From the NCBI GenBank assembly GCA_964106645.2, contig OZ067044.1: a stretch of 64,000 nucleotides of DNA. One strand, written 5' to 3'. The position numbers and the translations under genes were made by a program. Numbering within the stretch: position 1 is the first letter of the stretch; every line of letters begins with the position of its first letter. The notes below the pieces were generated by a model. It searched no databases, was not told where the DNA came from, and worked only from the letters and a program-made list of their open reading frames with translations. Shown one piece after another: positions 51,701-58,366 of this stretch. Source of the DNA: Podarcis pityusensis. Taxonomy: Eukaryota.

Positions 51701-53263
51701 AGTTGTCCTATTTGTAGTGTTGGAAAGGGAACTTATTCCACTTCCGATGGACAATAAACCAAATGCATATATAGGCTGTTAGTAGCAGAATAGGGGATAA
51801 ATGAAAAGGAACTGTTCCCCTAAATGCTATGGGTGAAGAAGTTCTGCTAGTACACAGACTTCTGGCTGTGCAGTGGAACTTTCCATTCCTTTCCCTGTGG
51901 GCCCTCAAATCAATCAATCAATCAATCAATCAATCAAATTTGTATACTGTTCTTCATGCATAGATCTCAGGGCAGTTCACAGCATTAACCTGTTCTGGGA
52001 ATTCCCTCAACCCTCCAGAGTATATTTCATATGCAAGCACTCCATGCATTAAAAGATACAGGAAGCTGAACTCCTGACCTCTTTATCTGGCCCTCACCTC
52101 CCTCCTTGCCTTTCCTGCAGCTAGAAAACAACTATCCTGTTGGAGTAAAGATTATTTCCCCCCTTGCCTAGATGCAGCTGGGATGGGAATGGTCAACCCT
52201 GCCTCCACATATGTTGTTTCATCACCATGCTCCAAAGCACCTTCCCCGTGCTGCGGTTAGCTTTGTAAAAAGGTTCCTAGTGACTCCGACCTAATCGTGG
52301 CAGGCGGGGGGAGTGTTGTGTGTGGTGTGAGAGAGAGCATGGCATGGCCATGCCCACTGCAGACACAGGGCCCTCAGAAATGGGCTACGAGAGAACGTGA
52401 CAGGCCCATCCCTGTTCTCAGCCTGCAACAATTCAGCATGCTACACAATAAACCCTTTATTAAGTTCCGTGGGACTTCCGTGGGTACATTGGGATTTGAC
52501 TATAAAACAGCAAATGAATAACTCAGCCTTATAAAGAGTATTATTAAGGGGGAAATGAGCATTTCAAGTATTGTAATCCTAAACAAATATTTCTGTTCTC
52601 AGTCCTCCATGACTTCTGCACTTGTATAACAATAGATTACCAATACATTACAGGTCTCATTCAGGTGCTTTACTGTTTCTTCTTCATTCTCTTTTAATGC
52701 TATATAATGCAGCCTGTTTTAACTAAGTTTCCTTACAGGTGATCCCTCTCGCTTTACCTTTTCAACTTAGGGCCACTTCACACTTGCGTACTACCAGATT
52801 TCTAGGCAGAAGTTGTAGGATCTGGTAGCACGTCAAGTGATCCCAAGTCTAGGATGAGATGCATCTGTCAGAAGCATGCATGCTCAGCTTGCTTTTACCT
52901 AACTTACTCTACTGGGAAGCCTATTTGTGTGTCTTCAGAATCCTTCTTTGGCACTCAGTTAAACCTTTACATGATATAATTGCTTGTTACCAATATTTGA
53001 TAAGCGTGGTGCTTAACTAAGTCAAAATCAAGGTAGGCTTAGTCATAACTGTTACATCCATTCACTTTCAGTAGGTTTACTTGGACTTAGTTGGATATCA
53101 CTCTCAGTTTACAATGCTTGATTTTCCTGTAGGCTCTTGAGATTTATAAGACTGTGATGGTGGAATAACTTTTTGTCATAAGTTGTACATCTTTTCTGTG
53201 TTACTCCAGGGGTGGGATGCTATTGAGTGGACAATTCAACATTCTGACACTGTTCTAAGATAG
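45511..53263 (+). CDS. PRELID3A: PRELI domain-containing protein 3A (SLMO1), proximal-last-exon isoform; join(45511..45542,49052..49220,49522..49611,50824..50894,50984..51086,53210..53263), 172 aa
   Basis: [39 protein letters not shown]...[31 protein letters not shown]1 domain, GT-AG junctions in phase, and synteny with AFG3L2. Confidence 0.93.
48600..48628. repeat. (TTA)n microsatellite, probably a LINE tail
   Basis: About 9 units following ggtatataaatttaataaa. Confidence 0.85.
51908..51936. repeat. (AATC)n microsatellite
   Basis: About 7 units. Confidence 0.85.
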
Positions 53264-54175
53264 CAGTCTCTTTCTACAGCTGCATTTTGTACTAATTAGT
53301 GGTAATACCAGCATTTGTTACCTTGGTACAGCATTTCAGCTTCTAGCAAATCTGTGCATGTTGTTGTCATGTTACTTGAAAGCCTGCATGCCTCGTATAT
53401 ATACACACATTGCATATAGAGGAACAGCACCCTTATTCTTTAACTCTGGAATTTGGGGGGCGTCTGTACTGTCTAATGCTTTGACACAGGAAAAGGTTCT
53501 TATGAACCTGCATGTGTGGGCCACTAATAAGGCCCACCTTCTGTTCTTTGGTAAATCTCTTTTGAGTAAGTGGAATACTGTTAAAAGAACTGCTGCACCT
53601 TGGCCCCAGAGTATTTTGGAAGTAGGTGAAGCTCTGTACAACCAGTCCTCTTGATCCAATGCATGGAATGCTTTGGGGTGAAATACTTGAGGTTGTTAAC
53701 TAGTTCACACTACTGCTGGACTTAGCCTACAGTATGGCAATTCTTGCCTATCAGTGTAGAAATACAGTCCCATCACTGCTTGGACAGAAGGGTTCTCGTT
53801 TAAAAGAAAGCAGTTTATGAAGTCACAATTAGAACATTTGCACCTGTTTACTTGGTCCTTGTTGGTTTTTCCTTTGAGGCAGCTTAAAATCCGTGCAAAA
53901 AGAACGCAAAAAGAAGAAACTGGTTTTCAAAAGTGCCAGCTATTAAGCTTTATTGTCGCTCAGCGCATTTTGGAACTGTCATTCCTCCCTCATGGTGCCC
54001 AATGGGCAGCAGAGCATTTATGTAAGTTGCTTCAGAAAGTCCAAGATTGATCCTGAAGAAGGAACTTCTGTTCTGAAACACATTGTACTATCATAAACTT
54101 CAGCAGTTGGCACTTGTGAGAATTGGGTTCTACTTTTTCTCTTCTTTGCATTATTTCTAGTGTCTGGGCCTCCCA

Positions 54176-54239
54176 TTGTTTAGTCGTGTCCGACTCTTCG
54201 TGACCCCATGGACCAGAGCACGCCAGGCACTCCTGTCTT
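54176..54239 (-). mobile_element. Bov-B 3' tip
   Basis: Nearly identical to 29657-29720. Confidence 0.85.
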
Positions 54240-56188: not shown

Positions 56189-56374
56189 TATAGTCCAGTA
56201 GCACCTTAGAGACCAACTAAGTTTGTTCTTGGTATGAGCTTTCTTGTGCATGCACATGAAAGCTCATACCAAGAACAAATTTAGTTGGTCTCTAAGGTGC
56301 TACTGGACAATTTTTTAATTTTTTATATATATTTCTACTGCGTCAGACCAACATGGCTACCTACCGGAATCTAG
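56189..56374. mobile_element. Penelope-like element remnant with inverted pseudo-LTR (116-bp palindrome)
   Basis: Palindrome at 56193-56308, tail gaccaacatggctacc shared with 63000-63128, and possible 8-bp TSD AATTACTA (56181-56188 / 56375-56382). Confidence 0.7.
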
Positions 56375-58273
56375 AATTACTAGAATTGTTTGGAGAAAAA
56401 CATGGTTGTGATATTCTTAGAAGCCCAGTATAAGGTTACAGTGTAGATAAGCCCAAAGGCTGTTTCTTCAATCTATTGGTTCATTACACTTTTTATTTCA
56501 AAACTAAGGGTGACTTCCAGTTAACTTGTTCCATCAGCACAAGGATTTTCACTTGCAGAAGGAAACTTCCCCCCTCTTCTTTCACTGTGCATGCCCCATG
56601 CCCTCCTCAAATCTGCTTTATAGGGTTGGGGGTACAGCAGAACAGATTTAGGGGGGTGTCAGGGAAAGGAGAGGGGGTTAGTTCTGTTGTGCATATGGAA
56701 ATCTGCACACTGACAGAGCAAGCTAGTTGCTTTGTCACAGTTTAGAAACAACAAATGCAAATAATATATCCATCTCTCTCTCTTCCAGGAGTGTTGACCT
56801 GAGCTGTTAAGTTTACAGATTTCAACTGAGCACATTTGTATCCAGAAAGATTATGTAACTGTCATTTAATCCAGTAGTGTTCTGTTTCAATTAAAACAAG
56901 CAGCTATAAAAAAAAATAAGTTGGTAGTTAAAGCAGTCATGGTGTGGTACAGGCTTAAAACTAACAGCAATTTGGCTCGAAATGTTAAGCCTTAAGCTAT
57001 TTAGTATTCTGTACAAATACCGTGTTCAGGCTTTTCATAATGCAGATGTGCGCACAGTTTCACTGTATATTTATGTTTCAAAGAAATTAGCTATAGTCCA
57101 GGTAATAAGAGGAGAGGCGGTTCTTGAGCAAAGGTATCTTTTGATCACACGCTAAGTGGCCTTTTGCATCTGCACAAGTGATTAGGCTCCTAGCCTGAAT
57201 ACTTATGGAGGCTCTCACTTTTTTGCTGAGTTTCTCTACTTGAGCTTACTGAGGTTTTCTCCTCAGTTCCACTAGCGCAAGCGCTTTTAACTATGCATGA
57301 GAACTTACCCTACCTGCACACCCTCTAAATCTGCCCTGAAGGGTTGAGGGCAAACTCAAAAAATATTTAGAGGGTGCGCAGGTTGAAGCAGTTCCATTGT
57401 GCAGCCAAGAGTGCTTGCACTGGTGCAACTGTTAAGTTGAATACTGCCCAGCATGTGTTTCAAGTTCTTCTTATTTAGGTTTGCCATCTGTAGCTGGTCT
57501 TTAGGCTCAGTTAAACTGAATTCTAGCAAAAGCGACGCTCTTGCTTTCTAAGTTGCTCTGTACTGAGCATCAGTGATGGTAATTTAGTGTTTCATGATAG
57601 AGAGTAAACAGGATGGGAAAGAAACCATAAACTATAGGTTCATTAATAACGTTCATTAGGACTTGTAACAACTTTTCCACTGCTAGGATGAAGCGGAAGA
57701 AATTGAAGGGGGGGAAATATTATTGATGGGAGAAGGGCTAGTATTAGGCCTCATGTCTGTTCGGTTGCAATCTTACCATGGTAATGGAGGAAGCCACAGA
57801 AATGTGATAGAAAAAATTTCAGGTTGTTCAGAGGCATGCTAGGGATATGAAGCAAATGATGCTTTGCACTTTGAAAAAAGTGGGTAGTCAAAACTCTCTC
57901 TAGCACTGATCCAAGTGCAACAGTCTCTTGTAATTGTGCCTTGCTAGACAGATCTAACATTTGTACTCTGCAAAAGAGCTAGCTTGTAGTCTTGTAACTT
58001 TGTTGGCCTATTATTACTAAGAAAAATGTATTGTCTAAGCAGATCACCCTTCAATTTACGGTTTTCCTTGTTACAGAAGCAAAGGCGGACTAGAATGAAA
58101 TAATATCGTCGTACAAATTCAATGGCACAATTCATTATGATACATTCATAATTCAGAAGACAACAAAGCAGTTTGCTTTGGGAGATCTTTTGGTGTCTGA
58201 CAGAGGAAAGATTTAGAAGTTTAACATCAGTGTATCTGGTCAACCCACTTAGCTCTTGTTCCTTCTTTAACAG

Positions 58274-58366
58274 GGTCGAGAAGCCTTAGAATGGGTGATT
58301 GGCGAACTAACTTCGACGCGAGAGAGCATGAAGTCCGCAATGGCAGCAGCTTCAGCGGAGGACTGA
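58274..58366 (+). CDS. PRELID3A: Alternative distal last exon of PRELID3A (PRELID3B-like C-terminus); gives a 185-aa isoform when spliced to exon 5
   Basis: Pyrimidine-rich acceptor ctcttgttccttctttaacag, phase 0, encoding GREALEWVIGELTSTRESMKSAMAAASAED*. Homologous to the proximal exon and to the recalled PRELID3B end GREAMEWVIHKLN...PMAAAAFAEK. Confidence 0.8.
   Translation, partial: GREALEWVIGELTSTRESMKSAMAAASAED

Follow-up and report, generated by a model that had tools for sequence, protein, structure and literature searches.

The window (the whole 64,000-nt stretch of Podarcis pityusensis contig OZ067044.1 that was analyzed) holds a gene which, by its sequence and gene order, is the PRELID3A (SLMO1) orthologue of this lizard and whose predicted product is a lipid-transfer protein of the PRELI/Ups type. 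Our main reading, to which we give a probability of roughly 0.85, is that this gene consists of five constitutive coding exons and, after them, either of two terminal coding exons that are homologous to each other, a proximal one with a GW-type tail and a distal one with a GRE-type tail that resembles the end of PRELID3B (SLMO2). Both terminal exons would extend the long C-terminal helix alpha3 and share the core G-x-x-A-x-E-W-x-I. The distal exon would represent the ancestral PRELID3B-like tail and the default mRNA end in lizards and other sauropsids, with a 3'UTR of about 4 kb. The proximal exon would stem from an old duplication that dates back at least to bony vertebrates, and it would give the short 172-aa form that is canonical in mammals. 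The two proteins may also differ in function.

The gene order in the window was beta-tubulin (TUBB6-like, 14.9-21.4 kb, plus strand), AFG3L2 (AFG3L2-like exons at about 25.6-43.5 kb, minus strand) and the gene described here (plus strand), and on the basis of this synteny the gene was assigned to PRELID3A (SLMO1). Its first exon lies within a CpG island common to PRELID3A and AFG3L2. Orthologous loci were flanked by the same AFG3L2 and SPIRE1 neighbours, and at the loci of proteins named PRELID3A the upstream gene was of the FtsH/AAA/M41 type, while the downstream gene encoded a KIND domain. The neighbourhood typical of PRELID3A, with AFG3L2 head-to-head upstream and SPIRE1 downstream as in the human gene order, was supported. 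A GW-type last exon, a type seen only in proteins named PRELID3A, was found at 53210-53263; the source name of every GW tail that was looked up was PRELID3A or slowmo homolog 1. Exons 2, 3, 4 and 5 matched the Pfam PRELI domain (PF04707) in order, at positions 1-52, 58-82, 83-105 and 107-142, and exon 5 also matched PDB chains of PRELID3A and PRELID3B (E about 1e-12). For full-protein searches and structure models, database orthologues of each isoform stood in for the spliced window protein. Orthologues of either isoform matched PRELI positions 1-155 of 157 (E 1e-52 to 1e-55), so that membership of the PRELI/Ups family was supported across the whole domain, and the Pfam model reached residue 168, extending into either last exon by 13 residues. 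TRIAP1/Mdm35 binding and intermembrane-space lipid transfer are known for human PRELID3A and PRELID3B (PMC6408443). An origin of the distal exon as a piece of PRELID3B or of a retro-copy was rejected on the grounds of synteny and because every PRELID3A locus carries this exon in the corresponding position.

Exons 1-5 add up to a coding sequence of 465 nt (155 codons), and the phase-0 end of exon 5 and the two intact phase-0 last exons described by a previous sequence-only reading were all present (Table 1). Behind the acceptor tcttttctgtgttactccag, the proximal exon encodes a 17-residue peptide and a stop, and the distal exon encodes GREALEWVIGELTSTRESMKSAMAAASAED and a stop behind the acceptor tcttgttccttctttaacag. 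The two acceptors fit the same upstream donor and phase and each frame has its own stop, as expected of alternative last exons. That reading had also pointed to a CpG-rich distal exon and an AU-rich region beyond it, and both features held up: 7 CpGs were counted in 93 nt (observed/expected 1.07) against an intron background of 0.8 per 93 nt (observed/expected 0.21), and the downstream region was AT-rich.

Table 1. Coordinates of PRELID3A features in the window
Feature	Positions	Strand	Remarks
Exon 1, coding part (10 residues + 2 nt of Gly codon)	45511..45542	+	donor gt at 45543
Exon 2 (H12...A67)	49052..49220	+	PRELI positions 1-52, E 4.9e-17; splice sites read
Exon 3	49522..49611	+	PRELI positions 58-82
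Exon 4	50824..50894	+	PRELI positions 83-105
Exon 5, phase-0 end at 51086 (...SSNARK)	50984..51086	+	donor gtaggt; PRELI and PDB matches
Proximal last coding exon, GW type, giving a 172-aa protein	53210..53263	+	orthologue of the crystallised human SLMO1 C-terminus
Conserved non-coding block directly after the proximal stop	53264..53400	+	conserved in sauropsids; TGCATG at 53355 and 53385; weak candidate donor 53301/53302
Conserved inter-exon block, proximal to distal last exon (GTGCATG...TGTGCTTGCTT...CCAATCCTCTGTCAGATT)	55085..55195	+	TGCATG at 55092; possible poly(A)/regulatory region of the proximal exon
Conserved intronic element gtctgacagaggaaaga, ~65 nt before the distal acceptor	58195..58211	+	likely branch-point region
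Distal last coding exon, GRE / PRELID3B-like type, giving a 185-aa protein	58274..58366	+	form in lizard RNA contigs
Distal 3'UTR, ~3.8-4 kb, end estimated from contig extents	58367..62300	+	contigs ~3.3-3.4 kb beyond 58899

The homology of the two exons, proposed earlier from their shared motif, was borne out by a wider comparison in which the motif residues G, A, E, W and I did not vary between the tail types, the two paralogues and amphioxus. The sole PDB matches of the proximal peptide were PRELID3A/SLMO1 chains (residues 169-184, E 0.028), and the top PDB match of the distal peptide was PRELID3B (residues 169-189, E 0.54). Both matches start exactly where the match of exon 5 to those chains stops. 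The C-terminus of human PRELID3A/SLMO1 (PDB 4XZV, 8AG0), KGWAAIEWIIEHSESA, matches the window proximal exon, and the distal exon aligns with PRELID3B/SLMO2 (PDB 6I4Y), with which it shares the same layout of GREA.EWVI, a helical stretch and then MAAA. PRELID3B is a paralogue, and the window tail has 30 residues compared with 39 in bird and frog PRELID3B; we attribute the shorter tail to a squamate deletion. This deletion of 7-8 codons was common to Rhineura, Hemicordylus and the window, and the Pogona tail was equally short. Pfam scans of each last exon alone gave no match, the exons being too short. In structure models of both isoforms (mean pLDDT 65 and 72, which is low confidence), both tails were predicted to continue helix alpha3. 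Read from sequence, the two terminal coding exons are best described as homologous to each other and mutually exclusive, which points to a tandem exon duplication; in this homology they differ from alternative last exons in general.

Conservation was analyzed in the window and six other sauropsid genomes (three squamates, a turtle, a crocodile and a pigeon), which together span about 280 million years of divergence. Rhineura, Hemicordylus, Paroedura, Chelonia, Crocodylus and Patagioenas each had both exons intact behind AG acceptors, with order and relative positions as in the window. Pairwise dN/dS of the distal exon ranged from 0.08 to 0.31, with a dS similar to that of exon 5; the distal exon evolves as ordinary coding sequence under purifying selection. 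The pooled synonymous difference was 0.17 in the proximal exon versus 0.41-0.49 in exon 5 and the distal exon, and this suppression of synonymous change suggests that constraint there acts on nucleotides. The sequence after the proximal stop (~130 nt) was likewise conserved in 7/7 sauropsids. The last five proximal codons were altered in the lineage of the window and Rhineura (ESALS to ETVLS to DTVLR), where dN/dS against the other species was near 1, on tiny counts.

Each tail has counterparts in annotated proteins. Among squamate models, the GRE tail was found in Rhineura floridana X1 (P0295; tail 26/30 identical to the window distal exon by eye, exon 5 identical), Hemicordylus capensis X1 (P0288) and Pogona vitticeps X2 (P0286), which represent the same gene in species other than that of the window. 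It was also annotated in the listed bird PRELID3A entries, crocodile, turtle, tuatara, geckos, newt, caecilian and some mammal models. The GW tail was annotated in Heteronotia binoei X2 (P0284), whose first 12/17 tail residues equal those of the window proximal exon, in Pelodiscus X2, ostrich X5, mammals and teleosts. The main annotated form in sauropsids is the distal, 3B-like one, which is not hidden. An amphioxus gene (P0084, named 3B-like or PRELID3A depending on the source) carries a GRE-like tail; since PRELID3B also has a tail of this type, the GRE type is ancestral, in agreement with the polarity proposed before. The novelty that had been implied did not survive: for many species, NCBI already has gene models of both isoforms, which are real and ancient, not new. 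A literature search found no studies of PRELID3A/SLMO1 isoforms, splicing, last exons or RBFOX control; a TDP-43 review merely lists PRELID3A among mis-spliced genes, and a beef RNA-seq paper reports just an exon association.

RNA evidence came from contigs, not raw reads, of four runs of a related lizard (X1, X4, X9 and X13) that were guessed to be RNA. Runs X1, X4 and X9, from three studies, each contained one contig (depth 43-148) whose match begins at 58272, that is, at 58274 minus an 'ag' in common with the end of exon 5. These contigs carried 484, 388 and 499 extra letters that could be placed nowhere in 52900-58271. Because the extra letters match none of the upstream 5.4 kb and exons 1-5 comprise 465 nt, they fit splicing from exons 1-5. 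From their length, together with a protein (P0282) predicted from a 2.3-kb Logan contig, in which exon 5 is joined directly to a GRE tail with the squamate-specific deletion, we infer that exon 5 and the distal exon are joined in the lizard contigs, which supports use of the distal exon. By contig extent its 3'UTR ends at ~62.2-62.3 kb, where no canonical hexamer was seen. Of the RNA use foreseen for both last exons, the distal part was supported, but no spliced proximal exon was seen in the four lizard runs, whose contigs can miss minor or tissue-limited forms. The region 52900-53899 had no cover in X1, X4 and X9, and proximal cover in X13 (depth ~10) was rejected as splicing because the bin depth of 7.17 fits one unspliced ~148-nt contig ending at 53292. 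Use of the proximal exon is supported only by gene models in other species and by one transcript contig (L008), which was taken as pig-like since it clusters with a warthog protein and has a tail unlike that of the human chain. This contig passes the GW stop by at least 330 nt, unspliced, as a terminal exon would.

Sequence around the proximal exon is suggestive of regulation. The sense strand carried TGCATG nine times in the 5 kb between the last exons versus about two expected. In the window this motif lies 92 and 122 nt past the proximal stop, and in the six other sauropsids at +89-96 and +117-136, so that a conserved (U)GCAUG stands within ~200 nt downstream, as in RBFOX-regulated exons. 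Because the exon and the ~130 nt after it are conserved and contain UGCAUG motifs, its use is probably tissue-regulated, and motif conservation suggests that control may be of RBFOX type. Alternative last exons under tissue control, a general class that includes RBFOX-regulated exons, likewise have same-phase acceptors, their own stops, different 3'UTRs and a downstream conserved UGCAUG. An ATTAAA at 55083, shared by the window, Rhineura and Hemicordylus and absent in Paroedura, crocodile and turtle, is a possible poly(A) signal of the proximal exon.

Several other readings of these exons were weighed. That one or both are chance open frames in intron or 3'UTR could be argued from the weak matches of the single peptides to PDB and their lack of any to Pfam, but the PDB matches run on exactly from that of exon 5, each tail is present in database proteins and transcript contigs, and the integrity of both exons at 6/6 other sauropsid loci (seven sauropsids with the window), together with purifying selection on the distal exon, excludes it; we regard its probability as negligible. 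A more serious proposal concerns the proximal exon only, which might be a 92-nt stop-carrying cassette (53210-53301) that is spliced to the distal exon as 3'UTR, with inclusion via the downstream UGCAUG/RBFOX motifs. Consistent with it, an AGTG/GTAA 38 nt past the stop is conserved in 7/7 sauropsids (AGTGGTAA), two conserved TGCATG follow 50-90 nt further on, which is the classic inclusion-enhancing position for RBFOX, and a stop 38 nt before the junction would evade nonsense-mediated decay under the established 50-55 nt rule. Yet the donor is weak (+5 T), scoring ~4.7 bits versus ~9.9 for exon 5 in a hand count against consensus 5' splice-site base frequencies, and no joint at 53301 was found among the lizard RNA contigs. 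Moreover, L008, the sole readable GW transcript contig, reads through the equivalent GGTAAC and contains distal-exon sequence in no frame, and we consider the cassette unlikely.

The missing cover of the proximal region in X1, X4 and X9 would also suit an exon that no longer makes protein in this lizard lineage and is conserved as an RNA or regulatory element, for instance as a decoy acceptor or a regulator of distal use. The suppressed synonymous change, indicating nucleotide-level constraint, and the changed last five codons in the window/Rhineura lineage point the same way. However, contigs drop rare or tissue-limited forms, frame, AG acceptor and stop are intact in 7/7 sauropsids, and NCBI models use the proximal exon in gecko, turtle and ostrich; a silent exon appears quite improbable to us. 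Two alternative terminal coding exons therefore remain our preferred reading.

The discovery value of these observations is small, as both isoforms are in public gene models and no long-standing question is opened. Nevertheless, it appears that the vertebrate PRELID3A studied so far, in structure and in function, has been the short GW form, which is also the form in the two PDB entries. The crystallised human SLMO1 is this form, whereas the GRE form dominates lizard RNA contigs and sauropsid annotation, and no solved structure or assay of GRE-form PRELID3A was found. PRELID3B/SLMO2 and yeast Ups2 are phosphatidylserine shuttles. A last-exon switch of PA/PS preference, docking or turnover has been proposed from sequence, and the literature search brought up no paper on such a switch. 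In PRELID3B, helix alpha3 is long (34 built residues), and truncations of the C-terminal region are frequent among Ups2 variants with altered lipid specificity (PMC6408443). Human SLMO1, from an unspecified cDNA, neither localised to mitochondria nor replaced fly SLMO, whereas SLMO2 did both (PMC11649117). Given this SLMO1/SLMO2 contrast and the Ups2 truncations, a comparison between the PRELID3A tails would be inexpensive and would address a well-posed question. In reptiles and birds, the main PRELID3A product bears the ancestral PRELID3B-like tail. A broader and doubtful scenario is that the choice of end is a switch under RBFOX-type factors that dates back more than 400 million years, between a mitochondria-competent, SLMO2-like default in sauropsids and a short derived form that differs in location or activity, and that mammals shifted to the derived form with the ancestral exon decaying. 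If true, this mammalian shift could explain why the usually cloned human SLMO1 neither reaches mitochondria nor rescues slmo flies.

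The gene comprises five upstream coding exons (465 nt in total, or 155 codons) and two possible last exons (see table), which give proteins of 172 residues with the proximal ending (the GW form) and 185 residues with the distal ending (the GRE form). Re-examination of the sequence confirmed the anatomy described in the sequence-only reading, namely the end of exon 5, both terminal exons and the CpG richness of the distal one, which holds 7 CpGs per 93 nt (observed/expected 1.07) versus 0.8 per 93 nt (0.21) in the surrounding intron. For searches and folds, the spliced product was represented by orthologous database proteins. 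Exons 2-5 matched successive parts of the Pfam PRELI model, and exon 5 matched PRELID3B and PRELID3A chains in the PDB (E ~1e-12). The proximal peptide matched PRELID3A/SLMO1 chains only (residues 169-184, E 0.028), while the top match of the distal peptide was PRELID3B (residues 169-189, E 0.54), and both matches resumed exactly where that of exon 5 stops. Across 28 aligned proteins carrying one or the other tail, five residues of the shared motif (G, A, E, W, and I) were invariant; these residues and the continuing PDB matches bear out the proposed homology. The PRELI model extends to residue 168 in orthologues of both isoforms, i.e., 13 residues into either last exon. The pair is a real, ancient, and conserved set of homologous alternative last exons.

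Features of the PRELID3A region and their positions in the window
Feature	Position	Description
Beta-tubulin gene	14.9-21.4 kb	plus strand
CpG island	42-46 kb	reached by AFG3L2-like exons (minus strand)
Small element	43780-44030	inverted repeat of ~20 nt at flanks (CAGTGGTACCTCGGGTTAC ... TAACCCGAGGTACCACTG), GCTTCAGGTTA repeats inside
Exon 1	45511-45542	coding; splice sites read exon by exon
Exon 2	49052-49220	coding; splice sites read exon by exon
Exon 3	49522-49611	coding; splice sites read exon by exon
Exon 4	50824-50894	coding; splice sites read exon by exon
Exon 5	50984-51086	coding; ends ...SSNARK, then gtaggt
Proximal last exon	53210-53263	17-residue peptide; pyrimidine-rich acceptor in front
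Intronic repeat	54176-54239	SINE-like
Second conserved block	~55.1 kb	contains a TGCATG
Intronic repeat	56194-56370	SINE-like
Distal last exon	58274-58366	translates GREALEWVIGELTSTRESMKSAMAAASAED*; acceptor tcttgttccttctttaacag
Deletion in distal exon	58301-58310	7-8 codons (KLNTEFEE)
Downstream conserved block	63240-63387	~4.9 kb beyond distal stop

The gene lies on the plus strand, next to the AFG3L2-like exons. In other reptiles and one bird, loci of proteins named PRELID3A are flanked upstream by the same AFG3L2-type gene and downstream by a KIND-domain (SPIRE-like) one. On the basis of the PRELI and PDB matches and the shared AFG3L2-type neighbour, the gene is therefore the PRELID3A orthologue. 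The small element in the CpG-rich AFG3L2-PRELID3A interval is probably transposable.

Both tails are already present in the gene annotations of many species, and the existence of the two isoforms is therefore known, contrary to the novelty implied by the sequence-only reading. The GRE tail is the standard annotated end in the bird PRELID3A entries listed (mostly GRDALEWVISKLNTELEELKSTREG.KPAMAAASTEK), crocodile, turtle, tuatara, geckos, Hemicordylus (isoform X1), Pogona (X2), Rhineura (X1), newt, and caecilian, and occurs in predicted isoforms of rabbit, stoat, rhino, warthog, and anteater. The GW tail is the usual form in mammals and teleosts; the annotations of Heteronotia (X2), Pelodiscus (X2), and ostrich (X5) list it as a further isoform. 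Our literature search found no paper comparing or characterising PRELID3A isoforms. In the five mammal models seen (including P0046, P0296, P0298, and P0301) the GRE tail diverges beyond its first ~17 residues and does not have the MAAAS end that sauropsids keep. The GW exon of the anteater Tamandua (locus L006, exons 63989-64033 and 71034-71117) looks decayed, without an AG acceptor (GWAAVQWVAQHPVR*), and the only annotated product carries the GRE exon. Predicted isoforms of crocodilians (P0293, P0025) and a penguin (P0294) end in ...RPRCSGMGDQQTKH, which is the distal exon in another frame; archosaur gene models would thus insert, after exon 5 and ahead of the distal exon, an additional exon that shifts the frame.

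Both exons were intact, in the same order and preceded by AG acceptors at all six genomic loci compared (Rhineura, Hemicordylus, Paroedura, Chelonia, Crocodylus, and Patagioenas), with 1.8-2.6 kb from exon 5 to the proximal exon and 3.8-6 kb from there to the distal one. The distal type had been proposed as ancestral, and this holds because the amphioxus gene and vertebrate PRELID3B carry a GRE-like tail. Teleost proteins named PRELID3A include GW tails, and the proximal duplicate therefore cannot be younger than bony vertebrates. The dN/dS calculation suggested earlier gave pairwise values of 0.08-0.31 for the distal exon, with synonymous divergence similar to that of exon 5, so that it behaves as ordinary coding sequence. 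Pooled synonymous difference was 0.17 in the proximal exon versus 0.41-0.49 in exon 5 and the distal exon. One conserved block in 7/7 sauropsids takes in the proximal acceptor region, the exon and ~130 nt past the stop. The distal-exon deletion is common to the window, Rhineura, and Hemicordylus (L001 29313-29405 and L002 25381-25476 versus L003 19967-20083); the Pogona tail is equally short, the codons are kept in geckos, turtle, crocodile, and birds, and the loss shortens the predicted alpha3 extension. The downstream conserved block (71-84% identity in Rhineura, Hemicordylus, Paroedura, turtle, and crocodile) lies past the distal 3'UTR end as estimated from contigs.

An AGTG|GTAA conserved 38 nt past the proximal stop raised the idea that the proximal exon is a 92-nt cassette rather than a terminal exon. 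However, the sole readable GW-bearing transcript contig (L008, classed as pig-like by its cluster mate, a warthog protein) continues for at least 330 nt beyond the stop without a break at the equivalent GGTAAC and shows distal-exon sequence in none of the frames; in this mammal, at least, the proximal exon is thus more likely a true terminal exon. No poly(A) sites could be pinned in the window. At ~340-380 the same contig shifts frame after ...MELCSTN, with extra letters (VATMSK) ahead of exon 4-like sequence, a sign that this transcript may include an alternative or a retained segment.

In AlphaFold models of orthologues, which are of low confidence, helix alpha3 is predicted to start at residue 137 and to run towards the C-terminus in both forms, ending at residue 171 (GW) or 181 (GRE), with tail pLDDT <50. 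Both exons are thus predicted to provide the same conserved helical core and to differ in the residues after it: the GW form extends 4 residues past the Pfam domain, and the GRE form 17-18 in the window's lineage and ~26 in other sauropsids. In a yeast screen, Ups2 variants whose lipid specificity was altered often carried changes in the C-terminal helix or a truncated unstructured C-terminal region (PMC6408443), and human SLMO1 neither localised to mitochondria nor rescued fly slmo knock-down, whereas SLMO2 did both (PMC11649117). Given these results, a functional difference between the tails is plausible, and a functional reading of last-exon choice is speculation.

A run search yielded 18 small contig sets from related species, guessed to be RNA, four of which (labelled X1, X4, X9, and X13) were aligned to 52900-58899. 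Three of them, from separate studies, each contained one long contig (X1, X4, and X9: 4518, 1142, and 4410 nt; depth 148, 43, and 103) whose match starts at 58272, i.e., 58274 minus the "ag" that also ends exon 5, and continues to the end of the stretch. The 484, 388, and 499 letters upstream could be placed nowhere in the preceding 5.4 kb, and their number is about what a spliced mRNA would carry there together with a short 5'UTR, given the 465-nt coding sequence of exons 1-5. Contigs extend ~3.3-3.4 kb beyond 58899, giving a distal 3'UTR of ~4 kb. A separate line of support is P0282, called as a protein from a 2.3-kb Logan contig: it joins exon 5 directly to GREALEWVIGELTSSTRES...., and its tail shows the same deletion as Rhineura, Hemicordylus, and the window. 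The proximal exon had zero cover in X1, X4, and X9, and its cover in X13 was consistent with a single unspliced fragment of ~148 nt. Of the two junctions to be checked, these contigs fit 51086->58274, and none of the four runs gave a spliced contig for 51086->53210. The distal form dominates in lizard RNA contigs; such sets can miss minor forms, and the proximal form may still occur. The two intronic repeats, interspersed within the last intron, showed summed contig depths of thousands to tens of thousands in all four runs; loose ends were numerous there and the flanks poly(A)-like.

RBFOX proteins bind UGCAUG. Two TGCATG copies lie in the proximal block, at +92 and +122 nt past the stop in the window and at equivalent places in 6/6 other species, and a third in the second conserved block. 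The 5 kb separating the two exons held 9 sense-strand copies versus ~2 predicted from window-wide density (Poisson P roughly 3e-4, post hoc). From this conservation and enrichment, it is reasonable to infer that use of the proximal exon may be regulated and tissue-limited; lizard transcripts end by default in the distal, ancestral exon.
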